Shown here one piece after another: positions 3,496 through 63,100 of a stretch of DNA of 64,000 nt. The stretch is from Klebsormidium nitens (Eukaryota > Plantae > Klebsormidiophyceae): assembly GCA_000708835.1 (NCBI GenBank), contig DF237465.1:1227-65226 (forward strand). The letters are read 5' to 3'. How positions within the stretch are numbered: position 1 is the stretch's first letter; every line of letters begins with the position of its first letter. Below the pieces are notes generated by a model. It was not told the origin of the DNA and did not search any database. It was given only the letters and a program-made list of their open reading frames with translations. Made by a program: the position numbers and the translations under genes.

Positions 3496-6201
3496 TTACG
3501 GGAAGAAACCGGAAGGTCCGCAGCCCGTCTTCTCGGTACCGACCGCGTTACCGGAAGGCGGGAAGTTTTGCTTGATGGCTTCAATCGTAGACGCCTTCGC
3601 ATTGAAGGCGACCTGCTCGATGCTGGTGGGGATGCCGGTGGGCAGAAAGAGCGCGCTGCCGATCCTCTGCAAGACAGGGAAAGAAAGTGAGCGCCGCGAA
3701 GAGTAAGAGTTCTCGATCGGAGAAAATCTGCAAATGGAAGATGGCGAAATGCTGGGGGCGATCACCGGTGGGCAAAAAGAGGTTGAAGCGTTGGGACGTT
3801 AGCCAATGTGCGAAGTCCGAAGAACAGGGGGCTTGCGTAGGCTATCAATGAAGGACGTGAACTAAAGCGGCCGCTTGGAGACTGTATTGATCACAAGAGC
3901 GGACGCTTTTGTCTGGAGCCACCCTTCGTCCCTTGGAAGTCGGATTCCACCCGGAGGTTCATCGAGTCTGCCAGATTTACAGTGCAGGCCCGTCCATCAA
4001 ACATATATTCTTCGACACAAGTGAAAGTTCTATTTCGTCGCAGAGGAAAGGAGAATGTTCTCCGTTCACCCCTCTCTAGGTTTTCATTCTCCACAGTCTT
4101 CGGAGATAACTTTGGAATCAATGATTCTCAAGCAATCACTGTCCCAAACTTCTACGCCTCATGTTCTTTGACAAGACTGCGGTTGCAAGCATACTCTGAC
4201 CTGGGTTCCCGGGTTCTGGCTGTTGAAAGCCGCGAGCGCCTTCGCGGGCTTGCGGGGGCTGGTGTTCTGCTGGAAGTGGATCAGACCGCGGGGGAAGACG
4301 AACACGTCACCCGCGTTCAGCGTCGTCGCATACAGTGTGTCTGTTGGCCGCGCAAAGTTTACGTCAGCGGATGTCTCGTAACATGCGCCACAGAGTCGAG
4401 TTGACTAAGGAAGGTGCCAATATTTTGCGAGCGCGGTCCGCTTTCAGGTCAAATGAGGAGAGAAAAGTTCGTTCGGCGATCGGAGGAGATTCAGCAGAAG
4501 AGGTTGAAGGCACAGACCGGTGAAAGATGAGGGTTATATTCGAGAATGAATGAGGAATTAGATAAACCTTAGTTGTGAATTTGGAGACCCCTTCCATTCT
4601 TCAGGTCTTCAATGCATGCTTCTGAAATTTGAAAAGCCCTCACCAGGTCAAATTTTATTAAGAAATAAAGGGTCCATCCGTTATCGGGTCAAGCAATCTG
4701 AGCCGGACGCCTAGAGCCGTCAACGCTCAAAACCTTGCCATTGACACGCAAAGCGTATTAAGCTGGGAGCTTTTGCCGCCACTCACTGTTTGTGTCAACG
4801 AAGCCGACGTACAGCTGGCCTACGACGACGAAGAGCAGCTCCGTTCCGCGGGGGTGGGTGTGAATGGGGCTGGACACAGAAGCGGAGCGACCATTAGATA
4901 CAATACTGAAAACGAATCCTGCTGGATTTCAGGCAGGAACTAGGACTTCCCCTTCTCAACAGGTCAGACGCGATGTGATTGGAACGTCTGCGATCCGGTT
5001 CCGAGTGACTCGATGACGCGCCCTTAAGAAAGATGTTTGTCCCCTTCAGAGGTTGGCGAATCGCTCCTCAGCTCTTTGGTTCGCACGAGACGTCGACGAG
5101 AATTCAAGATATGCACTTTCATTTCGGTTTCGTCCAAGCGTCGAACAGCGCTTGAGGAACTGGAAATGGGCTATAGCATTCCGTACTTACTTCTGGCCGC
5201 ACGGCGCATAGTCGATGAACGTATACGAGACGCCCTGGGATCTGCAGAAGGCAATCCATGCCGTCAGTCTGTCGGACTGCAACGAATTTTATCCTTTAGA
5301 AGCATGCCCTCTCTGATTTGAATGGGTGAGGTGGACCTGGTTGAAGTAGGTAGGAAGTGGGGCCGAGTGCTCTTAGGTTTAAGTCGGTCAATCTTTTTGT
5401 CTAGTCACGTTGCTGTCGCTCTTATGGCAATCCCACGCACTCGGGACACTGTTCTGAAAAATAAACGCATTTCGCAGTAACCACAATGGTTACAGTCGTT
5501 AGCAAGGGCTCACGTCACAGCGGGGAAGGTTGCGGCGTTGGCGGACTTGGTCGCGCTGCCCTGGCCGGGCGGCACGGTGACGTTATCCAGACGGCGAAAG
5601 GCGAAATTGGCGCCAGTCACTGCACGGCAAGGACTGGCGCCGCTTACGCGACGATAGCTTTGATGGTTAAGCTCATTGATTTTGGATCGAATATGCAACA
5701 CAACTTTTCGCTGGAAAGTGAGTTGGAAAGGAAACTGCGGAGCCAATGGATTAACCGGGCTGCTTCCGACCGTGCTCTGGAGCCAATCACTAGGAAAGTT
5801 CGCCACAGTAGCTGGTCCACGCCTGATCAGGAACCCTTTCATGTAGCAAACATACATGACTTCTTTTCAATTTAAGTGCCCGCTAACAAGGCTTGGACAC
5901 AAAAATGAACTTCCTTAGCAGTACGGCTTATGAGGGCTTCAATAAAAAATCAACACCTCTTTGACAGAGCATTCATAGAGTGCTCTTTTGTGGCTCTCAT
6001 GAGGCGCTCCAAACCCTCTACATTCGACTTTCCACAGGCTCACCTCTGTGACCCCTCAAAAGAGTCAGCCTCCTCACCTTCGGCGCCAGTCAGTCCCGGC
6101 AGCAAAAAGTCCGCAAGGGGATCCGGGTCCGCTGCGGACGCCATCAGAACAGCCGCCGCCAGAACGAGCAGCGCCAAGCCGGCGCGATAGCTTATGGCCA
6201 T
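3496..6201 (-). CDS. Germin-like protein 1 (cupin), 6 exons, 224 aa, predicted secreted
   Basis: Exons 6201-6078, 5619-5514, 5241-5191, 4869-4787, 4340-4201, 3666-3496; all GT-AG, phases close. Signal peptide [32 protein letters not shown]; germin box 1 [15 protein letters not shown]; box 2 [11 protein letters not shown]. Confidence 0.92.
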
Positions 6202-8072: not shown

Positions 8073-11039
8073 CTACATCATCTTCCTGCCTGACGGGAAA
8101 GTGGCGGACGGTCCGCACCCCGTGTTGGCGGTACCGACCGGGTTTCCGGACGCCGGGAAGTTCTGCTTGATGGCTTCGATGGCGGACGCCTGCGCATTGA
8201 ATGCGACCTGGGAGATGCTGGTGGGGATGCCGGTGGGCAGGAAGAGCGCGCTGCCGATCCTCTGCAAAGAAACAAAGGTTTGTGAGCGGCACGATTGACG
8301 GAGCATTTGATCGGACGGCTGCGAGTGAGATGTGGGGAAATGCTCGTGAGAGTGCGGGTTGCGCAGGAAAGCGCGCAAGCCGACTCTTTGATTTTCAAAG
8401 GGAAAAGGCACGAGTTCGGGGTCTTGTTTGATGGTACGGTTGGTGGGATTTGATAGGACAGATCAAGCGAAAGCATGCTAAGGTTTGATGCGGAAGTTTG
8501 CCTGGGGTTTAGGTGGGTCAAGGGTTCCAGCTTGTCCGTAGGCTGAAGTGGCCGCGACCACCCACCATCGGGAAGTGGCTGTTTTTACTTCCAAAACGTA
8601 TCCTTTACCAATTGACGCCCAGGCAATCGCTCCCTGAAAGTTGGCGGCTTCAACAGAGCACAAGTGCAACTAATATTATGGTTCCCGACCATTCCGCCCT
8701 AAGACACCGTTTCTTCCGAGCCGTTTCGAATGAAGCTTCCTCCAAGAGGGATCCCTCGAGATTTGCCCACATCTTTCGTTCAGCCCGCTTTCAAGAAGAA
8801 GCTCATCAGTCTCGATATGTGGAGGTGTGCTAACCTGGGTCCCCGGGTTCTGGCTGTTGAGCGCCGCGAGCGCCTTGGCCGGGTTGTTGGGGCTGGTGTT
8901 CTGCTGGAAGTGGATCAGACCGCGGGGGAAGACGAACACGTCGCCCGCGTTCAGGGTCGTCGAGAACAGAGTGTCTGCGGCAAAGGCAAAGGTGACGTCA
9001 GCAAATACATACGGAAGGATGGGGGAATGCTAACGGATCAGCCCGCGAAGGAAGACAAAGACATTTCTCACGTTCAGGGTCGTCGAGAACAGAGTGTCTG
9101 CGGCAAAAGAAAGGTGACGTCAGCAGGTTAAGTACGGAAGGATGGGAGAATGGTGACTTCCAGCCTGCGGGAGAAGTTCAGATTCGGCCTACATTCAGAA
9201 TTGTCGGGAACAGCGTGTCTGCGGCAAAAGGGAAGGTGACGTCAGCAGACTGAGTGCGGAAGGACGAGAGAACTGGTAGTAGTTTGAACCGTGGGGGAGA
9301 CGAGTACGTCACCCCAGCTGATCAGCGTGCATATACGTGTTTCGGACAAGATGAGACGACGCCAGCAGCTTAGGTGCGGGAGTGTGGCGGCCCAGAGTCA
9401 ATCGCTCTGACAGGGCGTCAAAGGTACAAGGAGCGTCTTTTGAGACGACTAAGAGTCCCTCTCTGACGCTGTCATTGACAGTCCTACTAAGCAGCGCAAT
9501 ATTAACACTCCGTCGACGGCACTGCCAAGTCGCTCGACCCCTCTGCCACCAGAACGTTGACATGAGAAGGTAAACTGAAGACCACGGCTGAGACCGCGTG
9601 CGAAGTCTCACTGTTGGTGTCAACGAAGCCGACAAACAGCTGGCCCTCGATGACGTACAGGATCTCTGTCGCGCGGGGGTGGGTGTGGATGGGGCTGGAC
9701 ACATAGCCGATCAGGGAAATGTCAGATACGTGTGCAGTTCCTCGGCTTCAAAACTGCCTTCAAATCTACCTTACATTATGAGGTCAGTAGTTCTCATTGT
9801 TTGCCCGTTCCGAGGAGCAAGAAATGAATGAAAGATGCCCCCAGGCCCTCTATAAACAAAAGGATATCGTGATCCAGGGTGACTGAACTCCTTTGCGAGA
9901 TGAGCTTTCAACCTTTGAGGCTTAGCAAAGACCATAGTTGCAGGCTGGCAAGAGGCAGAGACGCACCAAACCTTCCATTGTTAGCACCCATGTGAAGGAA
10001 GTAGAAACTGGAGAACTGAAGATCCAGTGATTGATAGATAACGAAGCTCAAAGAGAAGTCTGAGAGGTTCTAAGGGTTGAACGTGTTAAGAAGGGCCCGG
10101 AGCCTCACTTCTGGCCGCACGGCGCGTAGTTGACGAAAGTGTACGAGATGCCCTGCGACCTGCACAGGACATATGTTGCACTCAATACTCAAGCGAATCC
10201 AATGATGATTCGGAATCCGGAATCAATTTCAATCAAGGTTCGAGCTCAACTAGTTCAGCATCAGATCCACCAGATAATCTAGCAAGAGAGTTTAGAGAAG
10301 CCTTCTTTTGGCAGAAAGTCAACAACAACGATCTGAATAATTGTGACTACTGTAGGGGGAGGACTTTCATCTAGACAGGCAGGACCTGATGAACAGATCT
10401 ACATGCGCATGTCGATTTGCCAAGAAACTTTCTGATGCTGAGGGATTTGCTCAAGGGACTGGAGCCTTACGTGAGAGCGGGGAAGGTTGCAGCATTGGCA
10501 GCCTTGGCGGCGCTGCCCTGGCCTGACGTCACGTTGACGTTGTTGAGCCCACGGAAGGCGAAGTTGGCACCAGTCACTGCAGCCCACCAAGAGCTATCAG
10601 AGCTTCAGGACAACCAGAAAAGATTTCACACTCCCTTAAAAAAATGTTTTTGCATTATATCTGCAACTGGTGAACCTGCTTTGTAGAGACTGCCTTTTAG
10701 CAACTGGGGTCTTGTTTGAGACCCAGGCGACTACAGTAGCACCTTAGTTGAGACCCAAGGCTTAAAAATCTGTCGCTAGCTACAGACTTGAGGAGCCTGC
10801 ATCCGTGACTCCTGAATATATCATATCATTCTACCTTATGAGCATCACTTCTGTAAACTCCCGGACTTTGAGCTCCTTCAAATCTTGGAGGATGTTTTGG
10901 AGATACCAGACTTACCTGGTGCACCATTCACTCCGGACAGTACGAAATCCGCAAGGGGGTCCGCGTCCGATGCGGACGCCACAGCTGCGACCGCTGCCAG
11001 GACGAGCAGCGCCAAGCCGGTGCGATAGCTTATGGCCAT
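8073..11039 (-). CDS. Germin-like protein 2 (cupin), 6 exons, 230 aa, predicted secreted
   Basis: Exons 11039-10916, 10576-10471, 10159-10109, 9694-9612, 8974-8835, 8261-8073. First five exon lengths (124, 106, 51, 83, 140) are identical to GLP1. HTHPRATE and PRGLIHFQ motifs intact. Confidence 0.92.
8975..9260 (-). repeat. Two decayed tandem copies of the intron 4 acceptor plus exon 5 start of GLP2
   Basis: The cag|acac junction recurs at 8974 (true), 9097 and 9218 (period 123 and 121 nt), together with upstream intron sequence (gctgacgtcacc...tttgccgcag). Confidence 0.85.
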
Positions 11040-11374: not shown

Positions 11375-13859
11375 TCAGAAGCTGGAGATATTGGATCCGC
11401 CCAGCTGGTTCCATAGTAAGACTCGGAAAGACTTGGTCAGATTAGCCATGACTGCGTGCTGCAGGGTTTGACCGCAATGCATGTGGCAGAGCACAGGTCT
11501 TTCCAGGAGTCCGGTGCACTGCAGTAATGCCAGCCATGCGACGTCCCACCGTTTGCTTTCTAATCTTAGCTGGTCTTTGCAGGGAACTTCACTGTCAGGA
11601 GCATGAGCTCACCCCAGCATATTGAACCTACGCAAAACTTACGTCACAAGAGGTACTATCCTGATCTGCATGACGTGTGCTCTGAAATCATAGAGTGAGA
11701 CTCAGTCTTGCTGCTTGTGGGGCCGTGTGCGTCAACCCGGCGTCTTCAGAACTCAGGTTGCCAAGCCTAAAGTTGACCCTGACTTTTGATTCGTGAGGCG
11801 GCAGCTTCCTGTGAGATGCGCAGCGCAGACAGAAGTTTGACCTTCTCGATTGTCGCATTAAATGCTTCCGGTGACATCATCCGACGGCTCGCGCGCAGGT
11901 TGCGACGGTATGACGGAGGGTGCTGACAAGGACAGGCACATGCCCCGCCGAATACGACCTTGGTACAAAGTTCAAACCTGCGATACGTTTTACGTACCGC
12001 ACCGCACTGAGCCTCCGATCCCGGCCATGCCAATGCCAGTGGATGCCGCCGCGCGCGCCCGCGCACTCAGACGGCGCTTCTGCGTACACGTACTGCAACT
12101 TGCAAGTAGTTACATAGCGTTGCATCTTCGCGGCCACATCTGAATCCGTCATAATAGACCTGGCACGGGTCAAGTCGCGACTCTGCACTCCCTGAATAAA
12201 TGTGCACGGTTCCACATGTGACTAAAGTGGTCGTCCCGGCCCAGCTCGCTCGTCAGGCAACGTCGAGCCGGCAACATCCACATTATACTGATTACAAGGA
12301 CGTCAGCTTTAATATCGGACTCGAGCTCGGAACGTTTCGTTGTGAATGCAAAACTTTGGCAAAACTGCGTGTATAATGTCCGGCTCACTACGTACTCATT
12401 TCTTTACAAGCAGTGGTTTTGGATTGACAAATGAATTGTTTCCAAACGTAGACTTCAAAAGCCCGATTAGTAAGGAGAATTAGATGTTAGAATTGATCAA
12501 GCGACCTACTCGAATTAGAGGATATATGGGAGCCATGCACCCAAGAGGCTAGAACCACGAAATACCAGTGATGAGGAAACAGATTCTTCATGAACTAGAC
12601 TCAAGCCAAGTACTATCTAGCTACATGCCTGGTTGTCCATGCGTTTCAGCAATCGGCTCTCGCTGAGTCAATGCTTGGAGCTTGTCATAACAGCTTATAG
12701 TCAAAGAATAAAGGTTCGGTCGCGTAGATATTCAAGTGCAGGTCTTTCAAGTCCTCACGGTGGCGAGGATTCCGAAGTTGATTGCTTGATCGATCTGGAA
12801 GCGTCTAAATGAGTTTCATGTTGGGTGAGGGAGGCCTTAGAGGGCTGCGGTACATGACACCGCATGCGCATGAAAGACGCAGAGAACGCCGAGAGAAGGG
12901 CCGGGGTTGTTAGGTTCCGGCAGTAAGACATCAAGAAGCTGATCAGCGCGCCCCAAAGTCTAAACATGTAGCTTCGGATTGGATACCCTGTCTGGCCTTC
13001 GCTTCTGATGCACTATATAACTGAATACCACCTGCTTTCCTTTGAAACCCAAAGGACTCCCTTCGACCTCGCCCATCGACGGGCGCAGAAGGGGAACAAA
13101 TTGCGGGAGGCGGGCTAGGAAAGTTGAAGACGCAAGCAAGGGACGGATGAATGTTTCTTCATTGCGGGTCCTTGCTTGTCAAATGTGCAGATTGATCATA
13201 TCCAAACGCTTTTGCACTGACGAGTCGCCACAAATACACAATCCAAGAGGAAGCTGTATGTAAATTGCGAATCCTTATCGTTCGTGCGCGCGAGTGATCC
13301 CCAGCAGATAGAGAACCAAGCTTGAGTCCATTGATCTTCCTTTTGCGTCTATTCTTTCCGGGTGGCGAAAAGTCATTGGCGTTAGCGGTCGGCCTTGAGG
13401 CAAAATACGTGAACGGGAAAGCGCAGGGGCAGGGACTGTAGTCGGCCACGTCCGAGCACGGTCAACGTACCAGAGATGATCTCACTTTGTAAACAGAGGT
13501 GTCTTTAATCTAACTCTTGTAGACGCGCTTCAAAGCGCTTGAAGCCCCCTCGAAAGAAACGATTTCTCCGGTCTACAATTTCCATGAACTCTTTCTGACA
13601 GCCAATAACTTACACCTCACTCACTCACTCACTTACCTAAATCACCGCGTCTTTCAGTTAGACGGGTACGTCACGCCGGGTCCGCACCCCGTGTCAGCGG
13701 TACCGACCGCGTTCCCGGACGGCGGAAAGTTCTGCTTGATGCCTTCGATTGCTGACGCCTCCGCATTGAATGCGACTTGAAGGATGCTGGTGGGAACACC
13801 GGTGGGCAGGAAGAGCGAACTGCCGATTCTCTGCAGGGAATGGGAAGGATCTGAGACGC

Positions 13860-14280
13860 ACGATCATAGAGTGGACGGTTTGCAGGACTCGGGCCGGTGG
13901 AGATGCTAGTTCGGACGCCAATGGGCAGAAAGAGCGCGCTGCCGCTTCTCTGGATAGAAGGCGAAGGATGTGAGCCGCAAGTTTGACGAAGCTTTAGAAG
14001 GACGATGCGATCGCGCGAGAATTTAATGCGAATGGGATGCCGGTGGGCAGAAAGGGCGTGCTGCGAACTCTGCAAGAAGCGGTGGATGTGAGCACCACGA
14101 TTGAAGGAGCGTTTTATCAGAAGTTTGTACATGGGCCGAAAGTTGATGTCAGTGGGCACGAATATCGCGCTGCCGCTCCTCGGACGATTGCAAATGGGCA
14201 GAAAGAAAGGAGAAAGAAGTGCTGGTGGGAAACGCCGGTGGGTAGGAAGAGCGCGCTGTCATCTCTCTGCAGAGAAGGCG
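13860..14280 (-). repeat. Four decayed copies of the GLP3 exon 6 acceptor plus exon start
   Basis: Pseudo-exon starts at about 13949, 14069, 14178 and 14266, all resembling ag|agaatcggcagttcgctcttcctgcccaccgg (true start 13830). Confidence 0.75.
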
Positions 14281-15252
14281 GATTTGGAAGTTAGGCAACA
14301 AAATCCGTAAACTCCGTTTTCTCGGACGATTCACCATACGAAGTAAAGCTAACCCCACAGCCGCAGAGAATAGGGCGGAAGAAGGAGAGCCTGCCTCCTG
14401 GTCGATTTTTTTCCGCTCGAACGCTTGATTGAAGAAGAAAAAGGCGCCTGACTTGTTAAGTGACTCACAGGTTCGACACACAATGAAAACGCTGGCATTG
14501 ATGAAGGGCGCACAGCGCTTCGCGCACGCGCGTGCGCCTGCTTTCGATTCGACCGCATGATCAAAATCTCTAGAGTACTCAAGGCATGTCCATAGGATCG
14601 TTCAGGAGATCCTTGCACTTGATCGTTCATTCCCGAGCGCTCTGTTCAATATCACCACTGCAAGACTGCCAATCTATCGAACTCAGAGCGGGCGGGTAAA
14701 AACAAGCTCGCGCTCCTGTTTCCCCACGCGACCACCTGATCATAAACCTGGTACTCAAAAAAATATCCGGCTCATCTTAGAGGTCCTTGGACTTGATCGC
14801 TCTTTCACAAGCGCTCTGTTCAGCTTCACCATCGCAAGACTGCCAGAAGAGGTAAGAGGGAGAACATGGATTCCCGGCCAGCTTGTGCAATGTGATGAAC
14901 CCCCTTGGGTATAACACCCCCAGATTGACCATTCGGCCCGACAGTGAGTGTCGCAAAACTTGCCTACTTGGATCAAGGCTGTTTGGTTGCACAGCCTAAC
15001 CAGAGCAATCACTGTGAGCCTTTTGGTACAAGGGTTTGCGGGAAGCTGGCCTCTTCTAACGACTTTACGACTTTCTGGTTAAGTGTGCAAAGCCTAGCTA
15101 GCACATACACCTGTTTGGAGGCCATTCAGAACCTGCATATTCAGTGACATAGAGAATCAAAGCCTTGTCAGGTTGACCCACATATTGGAGCGATTCTTCG
15201 TGCAAAGAAGCTGGAGACACCTTTCCTGACATATTGCTTTGTGGTTCTTCAG

Positions 15253-16011
15253 ACCCCTCCACACCCATCCCCGCGCAACAGAGATCCTGTACGTTATTGA
15301 GGGCCAGCTGTACGCCGGCTTCGTTGACACCAACAGTGAGTTCCGCCCACCATACCCGGCTGATTACAATCGTTGTGCTAACGACAGTTGTTTAAGTGTC
15401 GAAGAACGGTTTTCGGTTGCCTTAATAAACATATGTGCGTTTACAATGGTCCTTCACTTTTCCGACAACGTCTCATCACCGACCGTGACATGTGCTTCGC
15501 TCAGTTTCCCTTTGATCGTCTGAACTAGCCTTGCTCCCTCTTTCCATTCAACTCCTGCATATAAGGGGAGCTTTTATATATGGGACTTGGGTAGAAGGCC
15601 ATTCTCCGGATTGCCTACAGAACCACATGATAAAACCCGATGCTGTTTTATTTCGACTAAGATGAGACCGCCTCCGGCCTTCCTCTCTCTGTCACGGTAC
15701 CTGGTGCCGATAAAGGGCTTGTCTGCCAGAGCCTGCTTCAATGCTGACGTCGTCTGTAGGATACGCTACTGTGAATAAGGCTGGGCTCGACGTGTCCCTC
15801 TTCCCTTAGGCTCGTTTTGAACGCAGTCTCGCAAGCAATATGCTGACGTCGTCAATCCCCCTGTCCTGCAGACACTCTCTACGCAACGACGCTGAACGTG
15901 GGTGACGTGTTCGTCTTCCCCCGCGGTCTGATCCACTTCCAGCAGAACACCAGCCCGGACAATCCTGCCAAGGCGCTCGCGGCGCTCAACAGCCAAAACC
16001 CAGGAACGCAG
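15253..16011 (+). CDS. Inverted exons 4 and 5 of germin-like gene 3
   Basis: Plus-strand exon 15253-15335 (83 nt, cag|...|gtgag; [27 protein letters not shown]) and exon 15872-16011 (140 nt, cag|...|gtgag; [46 protein letters not shown]). Lengths and phases equal exons 4 and 5 of GLP1 and GLP2. Confidence 0.9.
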
Positions 16012-19000
16012 GTGAGCCGAAGGATCAAATTCTGCAAATAGTCCAGATGACGTCACACGTTTGACCGGACCGGCCTGGATGCAGATTGACAGAACGGAAC
16101 GGAACCGAACGGAACGCACCTTGAGGAGAACATGGACTCCCGGCCAACTCTGGACAGGCCTAGACGGGGTCAACGGTCTAAATGCAAAGGCTAACTAGAC
16201 TGGAAAGAAAAAGCCAGTAAGATTGAAGCACCACCAAGGTCAGGGGAACGTTCCTATCTAGGTCAAAAAAGTTGGAAAAAGGAAACATCTGTAGAAACAC
16301 ACGGTAACTCACACTTGGCCGCACGGCGCATAGTTATAGAAGGCGGCTGAGATGCCTTGGGACCTGCAAGGAGTGGCAAGCTTTACTGCCCATTCAGCGT
16401 GGCTACGCTTAAATTCACCATGACACAAGATGTGATGTAGGATAAGCCTAGGGCCCATGACTGGCCTAGCGCCAACATAGGAAGAGTTGATAAAGGGACT
16501 TCCTTACGGGCAGTCAAGAAGCAAGATCAGACAAGTTGAGAGTCGACATCAGACAGATTGATTGGTCCACAAAAGAACTATCTACCACAATGAAGAGCCC
16601 TGCATTGCACAGCATCTGTCTGCAGAAACATTGTGTCTCAATGCTAAGCGATTTCCTAATGGGAGTGAGGCCTTACGCGAGAGCAGGGAATGTTGCGGCG
16701 ATGGCAGGCTTGGCGGCGCTGCCCTGGCCTGACGTCACATTGACGTTGTTGAGACCACGGAAGGCAAAGTTGGCGCCAGTCACTGCAGCCCACCAAGCAA
16801 CATTGAAGCTCATGACATCCAGAAGTTGGGGTCAATGCTGCTGGTAAAAGCATTTTACCTTTGTCTTACTTGCCAAAGGTGCCCTTACTTTGAAACCCGG
16901 TGAATTGTCGCATGCAGGTGGTCAATGGCAGACCGGGTTGTGTCAATGCAGCTCTAGTAATTTGCTTGCAAACTTATTGCTTTCTGATCCACGTTTCATA
17001 TACACAGCCTTTGGACTTCAGCCTGAGTGAATGCAGATATGCCCAGCATTCAGGAAGAGTTGATTACGTATGACAGTCTGACAACTCTTTTTTTTGCAGA
17101 GCTGAGGCATGCTGCATTGCTCGGCTCCTTAAAACGTTCGAGAATGCCCTCGGTATCATATGGCGCCTCAACTTTCTCACCTGGGGCCCCATTGGCTCCG
17201 GAAAGGATGAAGTCTGCGACCGGGTCTGGGTCCGAAGCAGACGCCACAATGGCGACCACTGACAGGACCAGTAACGCCAAGCTAGTACCATAGCTCATAG
17301 CCATAATTCTGACTTGAAATAGAATTCAAGAAGCTACAAGGGACGGTGCCCCAGCTAAACTCTCTTCTCAGCTGAAGCTGAAGTTTGCTCAATAGTCCTG
17401 ACTGCAAGCTGATGAAGCTGGACGTACGTGTTGAGACAAGTCGAAACGCGGGCAGCCTCCACGCCTCAGGGAGCCAGCCCTGTAGGAGCTGTTCCGTGTA
17501 TTTTACACCTACACGTTCTGGCTGGCGCCTTCAAGGTGTTCTGGGAACTGACGTGCAAATGGCGGTGCAGCAAGTGCTGAGCGAATGTGGAATCTAGCTC
17601 TCTCTCGACATTTAGGTAGAATCCTGCAACCTGCAAGCCAAATTATTCGCAAACAAGTTACCTGGCATTGGCTAGCAGCAGAAGCCCAAGCTTCCTTCCA
17701 CCAGCGTGTAGGAGGACGCCAAATGGAAGCTCAGAGCGCGTCCGTCGCTTTGGCCTCCGAATCCCGATCTGCACTCTGCGCACATACCGGGGGCGGTCGT
17801 ATAAGACGTCACTGCTGGCGACTCCGTAGATTGAGTTCCGCCGCTCGGAGTCGCCGCCGTCCACGCGCTGGATTGCAGGAGGTCAATGATTGGATGCTTC
17901 CGTGGCAGGCAATCATTGATTGATGAATTTCCGATCGGACTCGATCCGGCGCCGACTCCGGCCGCTATCCGGCCGCTATGCGGCTATCGCCCCTGCGCCC
18001 CGGCCGATCGCTGATGGTTTCTTCCGTGATCGTCGACGGGCCCATGAATGATCATCCGAACGCCATTCCGACGAGACGACGAATGGGCCAGTAGATTCCT
18101 TATCATTCTTCTTCTGGATGGTTGTCGAACGACGGATAAGTGGAATTAAGCCCGTTGTGTACGTTGTCGATGGACAAAGGGGTATATGAGGCTCTTACAA
18201 GTGCGAGCTTGCATGGTGTGGAGACGGCGCGGCTCCCCCGTACATGACTTGGCATTCGCCGTCCAAAATCGTCCAACAATATACACGTCTTAAAGTCGAC
18301 GGGAGGTCGAACTTGAGAACGTACTCGACTCAACCACGTCGTCACCTTGAAAAGGATACGGAAAGACCCATCTCGGCAATCAATCCACGCGACCAATTAG
18401 TGCGGCGCACTGTGGACCCGGACAGTCGGACAATGCTGTGAAACAAGGTAATGACCTGTTCTTGATCACGTCTTCATCCGGTGTTTCCTTCAGATGTTAC
18501 TAATATTCTTTGCGACACTCAGGACTCGGAGCAATATAAACTTAGAGACTGTCATGAGATGATCTCTCATTCAACAGCGACATACCAGTCAGGATACGCG
18601 GACGCGAAAAATCGGAATGAGTTGTGGGGCTTGTGGAGTCAACCCTCAGTTGAATCGGCAAAGGGCATTAAGAACGAGACCCGCACAGTGACTCGACTTC
18701 GATCTGTTACATTGAGGTTGATAAGAGGACTTAGAACTTTTAAAGTCTTAGACGTATGCGTCGATAATGTGAGGACAGGGTCGAGGACAAGGTCAGCTCT
18801 CGTTAGAGACATTCAAGATGCGAGTCGCTGCTTAAGAAGTGAAGTTTGTGCTGGCACATCTTTCGAAAGCTTATCTGCCAGTCAGGCGAGTCGAAGCGCG
18901 ACGTCGCCACCTGATTCACGTTAACCGTACCAGATGCTAAAGCCCCGCCTCTCCTGCCGCCACCTATCCTTATTTTTTATTTCAATGTTTTCTTGTAATG

Positions 19001-22466: not shown

Positions 22467-23657
22467 TCAAATGAAGTTTGAAGACTTGGAAAACCGAAGA
22501 ACTTTCAGAACATGCCCACCTGCTTTTCTGGCCCTGACGCGCTTCTCGACCCGCTCCTCCTGCCGGTCCTTTTCCAGGCCCGCCACGTGCACCGCCTTCT
22601 TCGCCTCTTCGTCCGGCTCCACCCCCCGCTGCTCATCGCCTCTTATCTCCCGCCCATCTCCTATCCCCCCCTCCTGCTCGTCTCGTTTCTTATGCTGCTC
22701 GTGCCCTTTCTCCTCTTTCTGCTCACCTCGTATCTCTATTCGCCCATCTCCTATCCCTTGCTTCTCCTTCCTTTCATCTCCTGCCCATGGATCCTGCTCA
22801 TTGCCTCTCTCCTTCAGCGCAACTCTCCTCCCCTGCTTTTCTCCGTCCCCTCTGCCTTCCTTCCGCGAGTCATCGCCCTTCCCCTTGTTTCGCTGATCTC
22901 CGTCCCGCCTCTGCGCATCTCCATCCCCTCCCGTCCGCTCCGTTTTGCCACCCTCTCTCTCCTCCGGGTGAACCCTCACGATGTGAAACAGACGTTTCGG
23001 CTGAGACCTCACGATCTGAAATAGTCGCATCCACGTGCTGGGGTAAGGCGTCCCGACCGCAGTCAGCCTCGGCACCTTCATCCGCTGCCACGCCGCCTCT
23101 CTTTCTCCCCACCCCTCTTCATCGCCTTTCTTCTGCATGCGCTCCCTCTGCTGCGCAGGCTGGTCTTTGCTGACGTCAGCCGACCCGGATGCAACGTCAG
23201 CAGACGTCCGTCTCCCTGCATTCTGCTTCTTTCCGTTCCCCAGAACGTCCCAGGCTTGGGTCTGATCGTCAGCGCTGCCACGTGCATGCTGCATTCCCGC
23301 CTTGTCATGGCCTCCCTCACTAGAAAAGCCCTGAAAAGAAAAGAGTGTCTTTCTATCGTCCCCTGCATTTCCCTCATGAGTTGCACTCGCTGCAGCTCTG
23401 ATTCCCAGATACTGTGCGGGGCAAAGTTTTCTAGACGTTCTCTTCTTTGCATTTGACCCGGCCTCGGAATGCTTCTGACTCAAGAAATTGTTGTGGAGAA
23501 GGACTCTAGAGAAGGACCCTGCTCTGGTCACGTTTCGAAGGGGGACCACTTTCTGCCTCGAACTGGTCCCCACATTCCCGTAGGTCGAGGCATGCACGAG
23601 CACCTGTCCATCTAGCCTTGCAGGTCTTCTTCCCAGGGCTGTGCTTGCAGTCGCCAT
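22467..23657 (-). CDS. Long first-exon-like ORF: transit-peptide-like N-terminus plus charged low-complexity region; possibly the 5' end of the SAM gene
   Basis: 396-aa ORF, Ser/Arg/Ala-rich N-terminus then G/E/R/K/D-rich region with a duplicated GIGDGR(I)EIRG(D)EQ peptide. Linkage to the SAM exons is inference. Confidence 0.5.
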   Translation of the reverse strand: MATASTALGRRPARLDGQVLVHASTYGNVGTSSRQKVVPLRNVTRAGSFSRVLLHNNFLSQKHSEAGSNAKKRTSRKLCPAQYLGIRAAASATHEGNAGDDRKTLFSFQGFSSEGGHDKAGMQHARGSADDQTQAWDVLGNGKKQNAGRRTSADVASGSADVSKDQPAQQRERMQKKGDEEGWGEREAAWQRMKVPRLTAVGTPYPSTWMRLFQIVRSQPKRLFHIVRVHPEEREGGKTERTGGDGDAQRRDGDQRNKGKGDDSRKEGRGDGEKQGRRVALKERGNEQDPWAGDERKEKQGIGDGRIEIRGEQKEEKGHEQHKKRDEQEGGIGDGREIRGDEQRGVEPDEEAKKAVHVAGLEKDRQEERVEKRVRARKAGGHVLKVLRFSKSSNFI

Positions 23658-32359: not shown

Positions 32360-35300
32360 CTATCGTCCCTCCTCTCGCAGCGTCCCCGTGCCAGAGGGGA
32401 GGCCTAACAAGGAGGACAATTGGGCTGTGGAGTTCGCCAAACCTACTGGGACGTATTGTTGACTCCCTTGGTAGGCTACCTCTTGCAGTTGCTCAAGGCC
32501 GCCACCCGTGTCTGTGTGCCGTTGCTGCGGGAACTGTGCAGCGAAGCCGCCCCGATCCCGTCCATAATTACCCCACCGAACTTCGGAGTAACCACTCTGT
32601 TGCTGGTAACTACCTTGGTTAGGGTGAAAACCGCTTTGGTTAGGTTGCACCGAGTACCCACCCTGGTTAGGCCGATACAAGGACTCTGTTACGGCCGGGT
32701 CGAAACTCTGCGGAGCTCGTTGCGACTCCTCGGCCTGCGCGGCTGGACCCGCATTTACAGGGCCTCTCCAATCCTGACTGCGGTCACTCTGCGGCTGCAC
32801 GCCGACGTAGAGGCCTTGCACAGACGGTTGTTCCTGCCACTGGTTGCGGAGGCCGTATTGGGCGGCCTGTTGTTGGGTTACAACACGACGGATAGGGAGG
32901 GGCTGCTGCGGAACAGGGCCCGAGCTTGGAGTTGGCGCCAGTGGGAGGCTTCGGAAATTAGTTGTGTCTCCGAGAGGACCCGAATTCAACCCTGAGCTTA
33001 ACCCGGTTTGGCGGCTCGACACCCGGGCGTAGGAGGGGTGAGGTTCGGTGTAGACTGGGGCGGTGTTTAGGCCTTGGGGAGTGTGAGAAACCGGGAGACC
33101 GTGCATCCTCTGCTGGCTATCGAGGTTCAATAAAGCTTGCAAGGTCGAGGGAGGTGGGTTTTCAACCCCCCTGACGGCAGCCGCTTGACCCGGTTTCGGA
33201 GCAACCTGAGGGTTTGGGAAAGCTGGGTTATGCGCCGCCCATTGGAGAGGCGCTAGACTAGAAGAACCGTCCGAGGCGCGGTGGGTCTCCGCCTGACTGA
33301 CAAGGGTTTGCAACGTTTGGAGGTGCTGGGCGACCGATTGTAAGCTCGGATGGTGCTGGTTAAGCCGATAACCCCCGGACATGTTTGGCGGTGGGGCTTG
33401 TGGGTTAGGCGGATAACCGGCCGAGTTTGGCATGGAGGCTTGCGGACCGAGCGGGTGATTTGATTGCGCTGGAGCTCCGCCTAGCACTCTGGAACCCGCT
33501 GCTAAACCCGCTGCCAAACCCGGCTGCTGACCGCCAGGCCCTGTCGTGGGACCTCCCGCCGTCACCGACCCCGCTTTCTTGTCCTTCTTCGGCTTCGCAG
33601 GGCCTTTCTTGGCCTTCTTAGCACCCGTGTTCGGAGCGAATCCGGCGAGAGGTTGACCGGGAGGGAGCAGACCGATCGGGGGGGCAAATTGCGGCCGGAA
33701 GAGCGGCCCCCCCTGAAGCTTAGCACCGCTCGGTTGGTTCGCCTCGGTAGACGGTCTCGAGATCGGACTCGCTCTTGCCCCGAGGCGCGGCCAATTGGGG
33801 GCCGTCTCCGGAGATTGCAACATACGCCGACTTTCTCCCGACTCTAGTTTCCCGGCCTCTCCCATTTCCGCGCCCTCTGCTCCGTCCTTGTTCTCTTCCC
33901 CCCCACTCCGGTCCCGGGGGGTGTTTATCGGGGCCGGCATCTGCGGCGGCGACATCGGATGGCTGCCCACCTTCTCCTTCGGGGGGATGATCCGGATCCG
34001 GACGATCTTCTTCTTGCCGTCCGAACCGGGAGCCGTCTTCGCCGCCAAACCCGCCTCCTGCGTTAACTTGGCGGAACCGCTCCCCGGCTGCGCGGAAACG
34101 CCAAAGCACGACCCCCCCGGACTTTGGTTTCCCAAATTCTCCAGACCCTGTTGTCCGGGACCCCCCATACCCTCTCCTCTTGACGCACCCCCCAATGCTC
34201 CCCCCTGCTTTTCCGCTGCCTTCTCCCCCGTTCCGTTCACGACCGACCGGAACTGCACCCCCCGGAAGTCATTGACGCCCCCCAGACGCACCACCAGCCG
34301 CCCGTTCCCGCTATCCGACGGTCCTGGATCTCCGCTCACGCCACTCCCATTCTGCCCCCCCGCCACCAAGCCTTGCAAGGGACCCCCCGGGAGCCCCCCC
34401 CCTCCCCGTTTCTCGCCCCTCCATGCCCCCTGGTCGCGCCGCGCTTCTTCTTTCCGGCCCACAGGGGCACCCCCCCAAGTCGTCCCCCCTCGGGGATCCC
34501 CCCGATATCCACCCCCCCGCGCCAAGCCATCAATCGCGCCGCCCCCTCTTCTCCGCCCATTTCTGACCCCCCGCCGCCCGCTGTCTCATCCTCCGAAACC
34601 CCCTTGTTTTTGCTCGCCGACGGACGCCTGCGGCTGGGCCGGCGGCCCGGTTCGCTTCCCTCCTCGTCGGAACTAGAGGGGGGAGTGTCGGAGTCGTCTT
34701 CCCAGTCGTCGTCTTCTTTCGGCCGCCGGCGCAGTTGGCGCGTCGCGGGGCGCGGGTGCCGCTCGTCGGCTCTTCCCTCCGGAAGGCTCTCGTAGTCGTC
34801 GCTGGGGGCAAGAATGGGAGAAAGGTCAGTTTGACCTACAAACTCGTCGAAGTCTGCGACCATCAATATGCATCTGAGAGATTTGAGCGATGATCTTAAC
34901 CTCAACTTTCTACTTCTCGAAGGAGAATAAAGCAGGACCGTGTACAGCTTTAGTCAACATTCGCTTACGGACATCTACCTGGTTTCGGACAAGGACTACA
35001 CCTGCAACGTATCTACCACACCAAAGCGGTAAGTGAGGATCAGAACCGGGATAACTCTTGATAGTCCCCTTCGTCGTCAGCGCGATAAAGTCGGATGCGA
35101 CCATGCGAAAGTGCATCGCCAGATTGCTTTCCTGTTTTTCCTGATCTTAAACATGCACCTCAACCGCCTAAAAATCAGAAATCGAAAAGCAGGTTCATGT
35201 GAACGGGGCTAGTTGGCCATGGATGCTGAAGCTTGATAAACGATCAAAGCGGGCCGCGTCTTAGCCCCATGAAGAAGTTTCAGGAAGGTTTTTCACTGCC

Positions 35301-44424: not shown

Positions 44425-45696
44425 ATGGCCAGGGAAACGTCAATCGATGATTTGCCGGAAGGTATACTGACAACCATATTTGAATTCAAGCTGCGCACCA
44501 TGGAGGAGATGATGACCCTCAGTTGCGTCTGCAAAAAGTGGAGGAGTGCGGCATTGCAGACAAGATACTTGTCTGTAGAGTCCAAGTATCTAGAAGAGCC
44601 AGAAAGTCCTTTTACAAAAGTACTGCTCCTTGATTTACTAGCCAAGTATACAATGCTGGAAGACGTCGAATTTGATGTGACCGAATTGGATGCCCCTTTC
44701 CTTTGGGCATTCCTGAGGGGGAGGGACAGACTGACAAGGTTCACTTTTGAAGGAGGGCACCTCGATTTCGACAGCTCCGCTGCCCTTTTCTCAATGCTCA
44801 TGCTTCTGCCAAAGTTGAGACAACTCAAAATCAAAGGACTGTCCTTAAATGCGGGCGTGCTAGAGCAGAGACGAAACAGGTCTTTCGAGTCTCTTCAACA
44901 GATCCATATGAGTACTTTCTTCATCTCCCAAGCTGATCTGGACTCCTTGATGTCTCAGTGCCCCAGTCTGCTTAAATTGACTCTCATACAGGCCACTCTG
45001 GAAGTGGATGTCATAGAGGACCTCTACATCCGATCGCTTTTGCTAGAAGAACTAGAGTTCCGTCTAGCTCGCGGTACGGTCGAGCTGTACATCGACACCC
45101 CATCCTTGAAGTCTGCCGCATTGGGTTTGAACAACTATGGGAGTGCAGTATTTCTGGCGCACCGGTTGATGTCCCTTGATCTACACGCCTGCAAGCTAAT
45201 AACAACAGCAGGGTCCTTTTCAGGGGTGAAGAACCTAACATGGGGCACCGCATGGGGGCCTAAAGGTGTTGTCAGTATAAGCTGGGACAGCCTTGTTGGT
45301 CTGCTTAATCAGATGATTGGGCTAGAGTTTTTGTCTCTCTCTTGCAACAACGTCAGCATGGGAGCAACAGGTGCTCGTGCTGGCATTAGCCAGTTTTTTG
45401 AGGGTTTGGGAAACCTTACAGAACTTCATGTTGAAGGAGCCTGGTTTTTCCGCACGCTGGTAAAATCAACCCCACGGAAGGAGCAGCCACTTAAGCTTGA
45501 CACTCTGGACATTGAGCTGCCCAAGCCTCTCCCCCATCGTTGCATCAGCCATGTCAATTGGCTGCTATGTAGCAGCCCAAACCTTGAGTATCTGACCATC
45601 TTCACTGAGGCCAAAAGCCAAGCCCTGACCAGGCTTGTCTCCGCTTATCGGAAGGATCACCCAGATGTCCAAGTTGACTTTGAGCTAGAAGATTAG
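44425..45696 (+). CDS. F-box/LRR (RNI-like) protein, single exon, 423 aa
   Basis: Uninterrupted ORF with N-terminal F-box pattern IDDLPEGILTTIF...LSCVCKKWR followed by LxxLxL-type repeats. Confidence 0.85.
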   Translation: MARETSIDDLPEGILTTIFEFKLRTMEEMMTLSCVCKKWRSAALQTRYLSVESKYLEEPESPFTKVLLLDLLAKYTMLEDVEFDVTELDAPFLWAFLRGRDRLTRFTFEGGHLDFDSSAALFSMLMLLPKLRQLKIKGLSLNAGVLEQRRNRSFESLQQIHMSTFFISQADLDSLMSQCPSLLKLTLIQATLEVDVIEDLYIRSLLLEELEFRLARGTVELYIDTPSLKSAALGLNNYGSAVFLAHRLMSLDLHACKLITTAGSFSGVKNLTWGTAWGPKGVVSISWDSLVGLLNQMIGLEFLSLSCNNVSMGATGARAGISQFFEGLGNLTELHVEGAWFFRTLVKSTPRKEQPLKLDTLDIELPKPLPHRCISHVNWLLCSSPNLEYLTIFTEAKSQALTRLVSAYRKDHPDVQVDFELED

Positions 45697-61341: not shown

Positions 61342-61462
61342 CCAGTGAACAGTAACGGAGACGGGTAGGGTTGGTTAGGGGGTTAGGGTGGGTACGGGTG
61401 CGGAGCGGGTGTTTCCTTAGGTTAGGGTTTTTAGTAACCCCAAAATGCTTACTGTTCACTGG
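61342..61462. mobile_element. Short dispersed element, copy D (G-rich core with perfect 14-bp inverted arms)
   Basis: ccagtgaacagtaa (61342-61355) and ttactgttcactgg (61449-61462) around acgggtagggttggttagggggttagggtgggtacgggtgcggagcggg...ttagggtttttag. Confidence 0.75.
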
Positions 61463-61642
61463 GCTTGCTGTTCACTAGATCGAGAAATACGTGTGCCACC
61501 GTCGATGGGAATCGTGCAGGTCGGTGCACTAGCGACAAAACAAGCCACCAATCGAAAAGCTGGAAAGGCCGTCGCGACCGCCGAACTTAATATGCGCCCT
61601 CGCGAGTCGCGACCCCTTTCCTACTGTTTCTCTGCCAACAAA

Positions 61643-63100
61643 ATGAAGCGAAGCGCAATGGCGGCCATGGAAACGGACGCCCAGGACGCACAGGAAGACG
61701 CGCTGAAAGCTCAAAAGCTAGACCATGTTATCTTCAACGATGCATCCAGCAGCGATGTTGTTATTCGTTTGGTGAAGGAGACAGCTGCAGATGGGGCTAC
61801 TTCCGAAGCTTTGTATCTTCACACAGATGTCCTTGTTGCATGCAGCACTTATTTTGCTGCTCAACTCTCCGAGCGCTGGGTCGGGGCGGATGTCTCGGTG
61901 GACGAGCAAGGACGACTTGTTCTTGTTGTGCATTTGAACGACGCTGGGAGCTTTGAGGCGTTCTCTGTGGCCCTTGCTAAGTTGTACGCTGAACTTGGTG
62001 TTGGTAGGGGACAGTCTGAGAAAGACATCAGCTTTTCTGGCTTTCAAGAAGCCTTGGCGTGCCTGCAACCAGCAGACCAACTGGGCTTGGAGTCCCTGTA
62101 CAAATCTGCAGTATCTTATCTCCAGTCGATCCCCTGGACAGTGCAAGAGGAGGGAATGATCGTGGAGCTGCTAAGCCGGACGCGAATTCCTGAGGAAAAG
62201 CTCTTGGAAAGGACTAGGGAAGCAAGCATCACGACTCAGTACAGAATCCTGGAAGCTGTAGTTGCCAATGCGGTCCAGGGTCTAAGATCCTCAGCATTTT
62301 GCCGCAGCTTCGTTGAAAAGTTGCTCAGTTCCGATTCCAGCAGCAACCGGCAAGTGATAGAGAGGGCACTCAATGAGATCTTCAAAGATCTTGAAGCATC
62401 CAGCGTTGAGACATTGAAAAAACTCATTCAGAATCTAGTGAAAGATGCCGGTTTCAAGGCCTTCGCTGACAAGCTGGAATGGCTTTTTGGCCTCCCTCTT
62501 CCATTGGTTGCAAGTGAGCGCAGCCTGAAAATCAAGCGGAAGATAGTGGATGTGGTGCTCCCATTGAGGAGCGACAAGTCAGACTTTCGCATATTATTCT
62601 GGAGCGCAGGCTTGTCCAATTTGCACTCGGTCCTCGTGGCAGAGGTCATCAAAGGGAGGCTTCCCCTGGATGTGGAATGCCGCAAAGGCTTGGTCGAAAT
62701 GTGGTTCCTAGCTTTTAAGTCGCTTTCCGAAGCTGGCTGCTCTTTGGGTGGAAGGCTTCCAGATCCAGAGCTGGCTTTGCTGTCCACTCTCCCGCTTGAC
62801 GACCAAGCAGAAGTGATCGAGCCAGTGCTATCCATCATCTCAGATGAAAGGGCATGGGCGCCCTGGTTTCAATGCTGGATGGAAAAGGTTTGCCACGCAG
62901 GCGGAGAACCGGTAAGTCTGGTGATTGCGGATTTACGCGCTTTATTTACGCATGCTTCTCAAGCTGTTGGGTACAGCTCTAATCTTATGCTACTTAAAAA
63001 GCTGGAAGAGGAAGTCTGTCATGATCACCTACCGTCTACATGGCATGCCTGCGGTTGTGATCATTACCTTGCAAAGCTCTGCTGTGTCTACGAGAATTGA
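61643..63100 (+). CDS. BTB/POZ domain protein (plant At3g05675/At3g50780-like by recollection)
   Basis: Long ORF (61445-63100; likely ATG at 61643 or 61658) with IFNDASSSDVVIRL...LYLHTDVLVACSTYFAAQLSERW and YLQSIPWTVQEE. A likely donor ccg|gtaagt at 62911 means the true 3' end may differ. Confidence 0.8.
   Translation: MKRSAMAAMETDAQDAQEDALKAQKLDHVIFNDASSSDVVIRLVKETAADGATSEALYLHTDVLVACSTYFAAQLSERWVGADVSVDEQGRLVLVVHLNDAGSFEAFSVALAKLYAELGVGRGQSEKDISFSGFQEALACLQPADQLGLESLYKSAVSYLQSIPWTVQEEGMIVELLSRTRIPEEKLLERTREASITTQYRILEAVVANAVQGLRSSAFCRSFVEKLLSSDSSSNRQVIERALNEIFKDLEASSVETLKKLIQNLVKDAGFKAFADKLEWLFGLPLPLVASERSLKIKRKIVDVVLPLRSDKSDFRILFWSAGLSNLHSVLVAEVIKGRLPLDVECRKGLVEMWFLAFKSLSEAGCSLGGRLPDPELALLSTLPLDDQAEVIEPVLSIISDERAWAPWFQCWMEKVCHAGGEPVSLVIADLRALFTHASQAVGYSSNLMLLKKLEEEVCHDHLPSTWHACGCDHYLAKLCCVYEN

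Follow-up and report, generated by a model that had tools for sequence, protein, structure and literature searches.

How does a germin-like gene with every exon intact come to carry its two central exons on the opposite strand? The question is raised by GLP3, the third member of a tandem gene array at positions 13654-17304 of a 64-kilobase (kb) stretch of Klebsormidium nitens NIES-2285 DNA, which we call the window (assembly GCA_000708835.1, scaffold DF237465.1 of 65,226 base pairs (bp); window position = record position - 1226). As read from the draft assembly sequence published in 2014, exons 4 and 5 of GLP3 run against the rest of the gene, and we regard a real, fixed and evolutionarily recent inversion of about 1.27 kb, which would have left a young pseudogene, as the probable explanation.

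Anatomy of the GLP3 locus

We located the exons by local tblastn with six exon peptides, which revealed three tandem six-exon germin-like (Cupin_1) genes, all on the minus strand. In order of transcription, the third of these consists of the following parts:

17181-17304, minus strand: exon 1, with ATG, a signal-peptide-like hydrophobic N terminus and a GT donor, phase 1
16677-16782, minus strand: exon 2, AG/GT, followed by phase 2
16313-16363, minus strand: exon 3, homologous donor CAAGT/GTGAGT, phase 2, with an alternative GT 2 nucleotides (nt) upstream
15253-15335, plus strand: exon 4, germin box 1 (His, His and Glu ligands), AG/GT intact
15336-15871, plus strand: intron 4, flipped along with the exons
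15872-16011, plus strand: exon 5, germin box 2 (fourth metal ligand, His), AG/GT intact
13654-13830, minus strand: exon 6, phase 0 acceptor, stop codon TGA

Exons 4 and 5 thus lie on the plus strand with their positions swapped relative to a collinear gene, and each exon is present exactly once. This order and strand assignment is exactly what a single inversion that broke introns 3 and 5 would produce. Exons 1-5 measure 124, 106, 51, 83 and 140 nt, equal to those of GLP1 and GLP2; all internal boundaries read AG...GT with intron phases 1, 2, 2, 1 and 0, and the exons joined from 1 to 6 give 226 codons plus TGA with zero internal stops. The initial annotation of this DNA had described the same strand pattern and reversed order, together with paralog-type exon lengths, intact splice sites and open frames, and the tblastn coordinates, exon lengths and 226-codon frame agree with it on each of these points. 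The two neighboring genes are collinear paralogs:

3496-6201, minus strand: GLP1, annotated protein P0016, 224 amino acids (aa)
8073-11039, minus strand: GLP2, GAQ89382.1, 230 aa

Germin identity of exons 4 and 5

The displaced exons hold the core of the germin fold. Exon 4 alone matches Pfam Cupin_1 (PF00190; E = 8.6e-9), as does exon 5 alone (E = 2.9e-12), and the full-length paralogs carry PF00190/PF07883. GLP2 aligns with barley oxalate oxidase (2ET7/1FI2) over 164 residues (E about 1e-28); its HTHPRATE and GLIHFQ fall in register with HIHPRATE and GLMHFQ of the barley enzyme, and GLP3 has retained these residues. By way of this alignment, GLP3 exon 4 carries the HxH...E motif and exon 5 the His of GLIHFQ. 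We take His, His, Glu and His to be the metal ligands, following the ligand assignment and numbering of barley germin; the earlier proposal that exons 4 and 5 hold all four of them is borne out.

GLP3 exons 4 and 5 therefore share the HTHPRATE and PRGLIHFQ boxes and the Cupin_1 match with the barley germin oxalate oxidase (1FI2, 2ET1, 2ET7). Unlike the barley protein, GLP3 as assembled cannot encode a cupin barrel: its two central exons are encoded on the plus strand, exons 1-3 and 6 on the minus strand, and the locus offers no continuous coding unit for the complete barrel of ~220 aa. The residue at the exon 3/4 junction is Val in GLP3 compared with Asn in GLP1, GLP2 and barley germin. The Klebsormidium members of the family have no known activity.

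Origin of the flipped block

The introns of GLP1, GLP2 and GLP3 are too diverged to be aligned or to place breakpoints. As a comparison gene we used a paralog on DF236952.1 (scaffold 3; protein P0131, locus L002:10001-12917). The segment from 15225 to 16016, which runs from the end of intron 3 through exon 4 and all of intron 4 to exon 5, is collinear with this paralog, intron 4 against intron 4, at 64% in plus orientation. The segment from 16281 to 16803, which covers exons 3 and 2 with the intron between them, matches it at 64% in minus orientation. For the DNA of exons 4 and 5, none of the paralogs compared is closer than about 90%. Because divergence is equal inside and outside the block, the comparison argues for GLP3's own DNA having been turned in place, rather than a copy having been inserted from another family member.

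The scaffold 3 region (DF236952.1:136394-159310) harbors a second germin-like cluster, in which one 230-aa gene has >90% protein identity to GLP2 and falls into the same 90% cluster; about 3.7 kb from this gene, a 231-aa gene is encoded on the other strand. The germin-like family is therefore duplicated between scaffolds. A 1097-nt transcript contig (Logan SRR22937787), probably from a related Klebsormidium strain, encodes a further 230-aa germin-like protein of the same 90%-identity cluster as GLP2. This protein is 93% identical to GLP2 over the first 150 residues and has several GLP3-specific residues in common with GLP3 (MAMSY, NVGD, NAEAS).

A 25-nt direct repeat in the two breakpoint zones

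Homology to the scaffold 3 paralog delimits the breakpoints. Unflipped intron 5 sequence (14489-14609) matches intron 5 of the paralog in the gene's own orientation (E = 1.7e-4) and ends at 14609, and a diverged duplicate extends the unflipped material to 14845. On the other side, a flank just after exon 5 has a weak likeness to the start of intron 5 up to 16063, and intron 3 homology begins at 16281. The breakpoint zones are thus 14610 (probably 14846) to 15224 and 16064 to 16280. Coding potential was sought on both strands of the junction zones, and nothing convincing was found. The relevant elements are:

14525-14845, minus strand: two tandem units of about 175 nt each, 71% alike, unflipped intron 5
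14859-14883, plus strand: R1, left copy of a 25-nt direct repeat, 13 nt past the end of the unflipped intron 5 material
16125-16149, plus strand: R2, right copy of the 25-nt direct repeat, within the right breakpoint zone
16092-16116, plus strand: (GAACG)5 microsatellite, 8 nt before R2
14859-16124: putative flipped block of 1,266 nt if R1 travelled with it (14884-16149 if R2 did)

R1 and R2 have the same orientation and are identical at 23 of 25 positions, with no exact run longer than 12 nt, and their similarity stops at the edges of the 25-mer. The window contains only these two copies (0.00 expected by chance); none was found in 23 kb of another scaffold, and a scan of a metagenome collection was also empty. 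Inspection by eye revealed no internal dyad symmetry in the 25-mer. When the block is turned back in silico, R1 and R2 come to lie head to head as a 50-nt palindrome in which 23 of 25 arm positions are paired. The hairpin at the re-inverted junction comprises 23-25 bp at -41 to -43 kcal/mol (RNA parameters), whichever copy travelled with the block. Because re-inversion creates this palindrome, a palindrome break is the most economical origin of the direct repeat at the block edges.

A single inversion would have needed a break in each of introns 3 and 5, and would have placed exons 4 and 5 with intron 4 on the other strand. In the mechanism that we prefer, a double-strand break would have occurred at the tip or center of a hairpin- or cruciform-forming palindrome in one of these introns; once the other intron had been broken as well, end-joining would have put the block back the wrong way round. 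Breakage provoked by palindromes is known from yeast inverted-repeat fragile sites and from the human palindromic AT-rich repeats of the t(11;22) translocation. GLP3 would resemble these cases in that its ancestor would have carried, precisely at one breakpoint, an almost perfect 50-nt palindrome, and in that the rejoining at the other junction looks blunt and free of homology. Unlike the classic fragile palindromes, the reconstructed GLP3 palindrome has GC-rich arms of 25 nt, which are far shorter, and the outcome would be a local 1.27-kb inversion instead of a translocation.

Other sources of the repeat were considered and set aside. A dispersed repeat or transposon end does not fit the copy number of the 25-mer in the window and on the other scaffold. 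On paper, inversion at staggered breaks or by template switching would leave inverted duplications at the block edges, and recombination between inverted repeats would leave inverted repeats, where a direct repeat is seen.

Insertion at a staggered cut classically leaves direct repeats on either side of the insert, and GLP3 could accordingly have had the block excised and re-inserted at such a break, or captured from a paralog, with the 25-nt repeat as target-site duplication. The direct repeats at the block edges fit this scheme, and the (GAACG)5 tract next to R2 loosely resembles a microsatellite tail. Against it, re-insertion needs three joins compared with two for an inversion, the inserted piece would need to supply precisely the exons that are missing, with no overlap or loss, and a transposase duplication of 25 nt would be a long one. 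In addition, the block has no poly(A), keeps intron 4 and differs from every paralog as much as the rest of GLP3 does. We consider re-insertion very unlikely.

Both orientations might coexist, either as a polymorphism of the culture or strain or as a regulated, reversible exon-cassette switch, and persistence of the collinear form under selection would account for the intact exons. Reversible inversion by homologous or site-specific recombination requires inverted sites flanking the segment. In GLP3 the flanking repeat is direct only; the best inverted matches around the block are 10-12 nt long, which is the chance level. Since inverted repeats above 12 nt are absent from the flanks of the block and the 25-mer lacks dyad symmetry, we find no substrate for reversible inversion. 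No recombinase was detected by Pfam scans of eight large window open reading frames, a partial survey, and two intact paralogs adjoin GLP3, so that there is no obvious need for a switch. In the invertible switches of hin/fim phase variation and the yeast 2-micron FLP system, a discrete cassette likewise decides by its orientation whether the full protein is made; unlike in these systems, the GLP3 block has no inverted recombination sites, and no recombinase is found among the frames tested. The on/off switch that had been proposed for this locus gains no support from the flanks of the block, and we judge coexistence of the two forms to be quite improbable.

Assembly error as a possible explanation

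The living genome may instead be collinear, with the 1.27-kb block misoriented in the 2014 draft. Such an error would predict exons, phases and splice sites that are all flawless, as they are; the block is about as large as a small contig, and the 50-nt palindrome in the re-inverted sequence is a structure able to give false overlaps between forward and reverse reads. K. nitens was assembled with Newbler, an overlap-layout-consensus assembler that joins reads by overlap only, from 454 and Illumina reads (PMC4052687). There is no N in the whole 64-kb window nor in 23 kb of another scaffold. The right junction zone, from exon 5 to exon 3, spans only about 300 nt, near the length of one 454 Titanium read and short enough to be crossed by a single read. 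A flip in the assembly graph would need inverted repeats at both ends of the block, and none was found there; the copies of the direct repeat, for their part, differ at 2 of 25 positions and have no exact run above 12 nt. The overlap-based assembly, the lack of gaps and the lack of a repeat that could mislead the assembler make misassembly less likely, and we hold it to be unlikely overall. We infer that the inverted arrangement is present in the living strain.

Selection and age

If the inversion is real, the state of the exons limits its age. Pairwise omega between the paralogs is 0.1-0.25, and 0.12-0.17 for GLP3 exons 4 and 5. Compared with four relatives, GLP3 has 16 nonsynonymous and 20 synonymous unique changes (2 and 6 within exons 4 and 5), and the corresponding counts in intact genes are 14:17 for the scaffold 3 paralog and 24:20 for GLP1. 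These counts resemble those of intact paralogs, and GLP3 has therefore been under purifying selection for nearly all its separate history. We simulated neutral decay on the assumptions that transitions occur twice as often as transversions and that indels arise at 10% of the rate of substitutions. The probability that all exons and splice sites remain intact is 0.06 at 3% neutral divergence; the synonymous divergence (dS) of GLP3 to its nearest paralog is 0.4-0.6. As exons and splice sites show no decay, the flip, if it killed the gene, would be very young, at about 3% neutral divergence or less. The initial annotation had taken the lack of decay to argue for a recent event or an artefact, and the simulation now puts this figure on the first of the two.

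Splicing and public annotation

What can GLP3 still produce as it stands? Joining exon 6 to the homologous donor of exon 3 (CAAGT/GTGAGT) breaks the reading frame and yields 146 codons, as had been expected from the phases; from the GT two bases upstream (CAA/GTGTGA) the junction is in frame and gives 151 codons, so the statement that exons 3 and 6 are out of phase stands for the first donor and fails for the second. Because a cupin lacking its core strands should not fold, we ascribe no function to the in-frame product. The codon split over exons 3 and 4 (16311-16316 and 15253) is GT/A (Val) in GLP3 versus AA/C (Asn) in GLP1 and GLP2, all three positions being different. The GT/A change also creates the tandem GTGT donor whose upstream GT puts exon 3 in frame with exon 6. 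Exon 3 of GLP3 has further changes, from YT to AA and from V/I to Y.

The public annotation breaks GLP3 into two models of 95 and 68 aa and leaves exons 4 and 5 unannotated. KFL_005160055 (P0134, 95 aa) comprises exons 1-3 and a short terminal piece, ending in CGQVI and a stop; the 68-aa model starts at an ATG at 14498 and is joined to exon 6. The terminal piece of the first model is:

16025-16031, minus strand: 7 nt read from 16031 to 16025 (A ATT TGA), acceptor tttgcag, antisense to the flank just 3' of exon 5

This acceptor sits on the transcribed strand in the inverted arrangement only. Transcripts from the GLP3 promoter would stop after exon 3, encoding the annotated 95 aa, or be spliced on to exon 6 or to decoy acceptors. 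GLP3 would thus be a pseudogene so young that its exons have yet to decay.

Candidate decoys are found within GLP3 itself:

13831-14276, minus strand: four degenerate tandem copies of the exon 6 acceptor and first 12-16 codons, about 86-122 nt apart, in intron 5; the AG is kept in three copies checked by eye

Similar structures occur elsewhere in the family. Intron 4 of GLP2 (8912-9384) holds three copies of the exon 5 start with a 123-nt period (84%), the scaffold 3 paralog has a second copy of the exon 5 end (L002:12199-12315), and a database protein of 1,702 aa (P0005) contains 15 exon 6-like stretches. Tandem partial copies of neighboring exon edges are thus a feature of introns in this germin-like gene family, and they may act as splice-site decoys or reflect simple replication slippage.

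With splice sites and frames intact on both strands, GLP3 might still function through trans-splicing of RNAs from the two strands. However, a collection of 5.8 billion protein clusters (roughly 15 billion proteins), queried with a full-length relative and with the first 150 residues of GLP2, yielded the 95-aa fragment but no GLP3 protein of collinear or exon-skipped form and no such product derived from transcripts. Nor is a plus-strand gene annotated over 14499-16024, and nuclear genes of streptophytes are not known to use such trans-splicing. The missing product carries little weight as evidence, since the National Center for Biotechnology Information (NCBI) record is the only place where GLP1 and GLP2 appear. 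Trans-splicing had been listed among the options for this gene; with no collinear product on record it finds no support, and we give it next to no chance.

Weighing the evidence

Of the four options put forward for GLP3 at the outset, we favor a gene-killing inversion of very recent date: the block is the gene's own DNA, the breakpoints carry a footprint, the exons show no decay and the annotation is split. GLP3 has presumably lost its function.

Several observations weigh against this reading. Flawless exons and splice sites are equally expected from an assembly error. Inverted repeats with arms of 16 nt or longer number one in the 64 kb, which is the chance level; such structures are so rare in the window that an ancestral palindrome with 25-nt arms is a postulate. 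The Val codon at the exon 3/4 boundary and the other two substitutions in exon 3 may be signs of a constraint that was already relaxed. No second assembly, strain or GLP3 ortholog was found in protein, exact open-reading-frame and metagenome searches: the exact look-up returned no record for four window frames that span or adjoin the junctions, and a metagenome scan with the exon 6 peptide was empty. Megablast against plasmids gave no match, in line with a eukaryotic source. No paper on a newer K. nitens assembly turned up in the literature.

A broader process is conceivable, in which K. nitens actively makes small inversions (about 1-2 kb) at hairpin-forming sites, perhaps heterogeneously within a culture, so that exon cassettes of dispensable tandem genes are turned off and perhaps on again. 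We see this as a long shot. The inversion that we favor compares most closely with young or unitary pseudogenes that arise from small inversions in tandem families: GLP3 is likewise a redundant member, structurally disabled, with pristine exons and a fragmentary annotation. It differs from them in nothing essential; what is unusual is the clean exon-cassette geometry and the breakpoint repeat.

Other features of the window

Further sequences in the window include an intron-less gene and an exon of a second, which are ordinary eukaryotic genes, and long open frames that have no Pfam match:

44425-45696, plus strand: intron-less F-box/LRR protein, 423 aa
56447-57217, plus strand: exon matching Vps39 domain 1
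32360-34525, minus strand: open frame, 721 aa, no Pfam match, within a stretch of 59-60% G+C versus about 51% elsewhere
61445-63100, plus strand: open frame, 551 aa, no Pfam match
22467-23657, minus strand: open frame, 396 aa, no Pfam match

Significance

The GLP3 inversion would be a known kind of event and no new kind of system, and its interest is modest unless reads show both orientations. Two public "hypothetical protein" models, one of them KFL_005160055, can now be flagged as fragments of one broken germin-like gene, and the locus provides a simple quality test for the 2014 draft assembly that can be checked by polymerase chain reaction. If the inversion is real, it would also be a marker for strain history. 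GLP3 would then be a gene caught at the moment of death, with the lesion present and every codon and splice site still intact, its breakpoints holding a readable footprint of the DNA break in the form of a split palindrome, and it would offer insight into how members are gained and lost in the tandem gene families of an early-diverging streptophyte.

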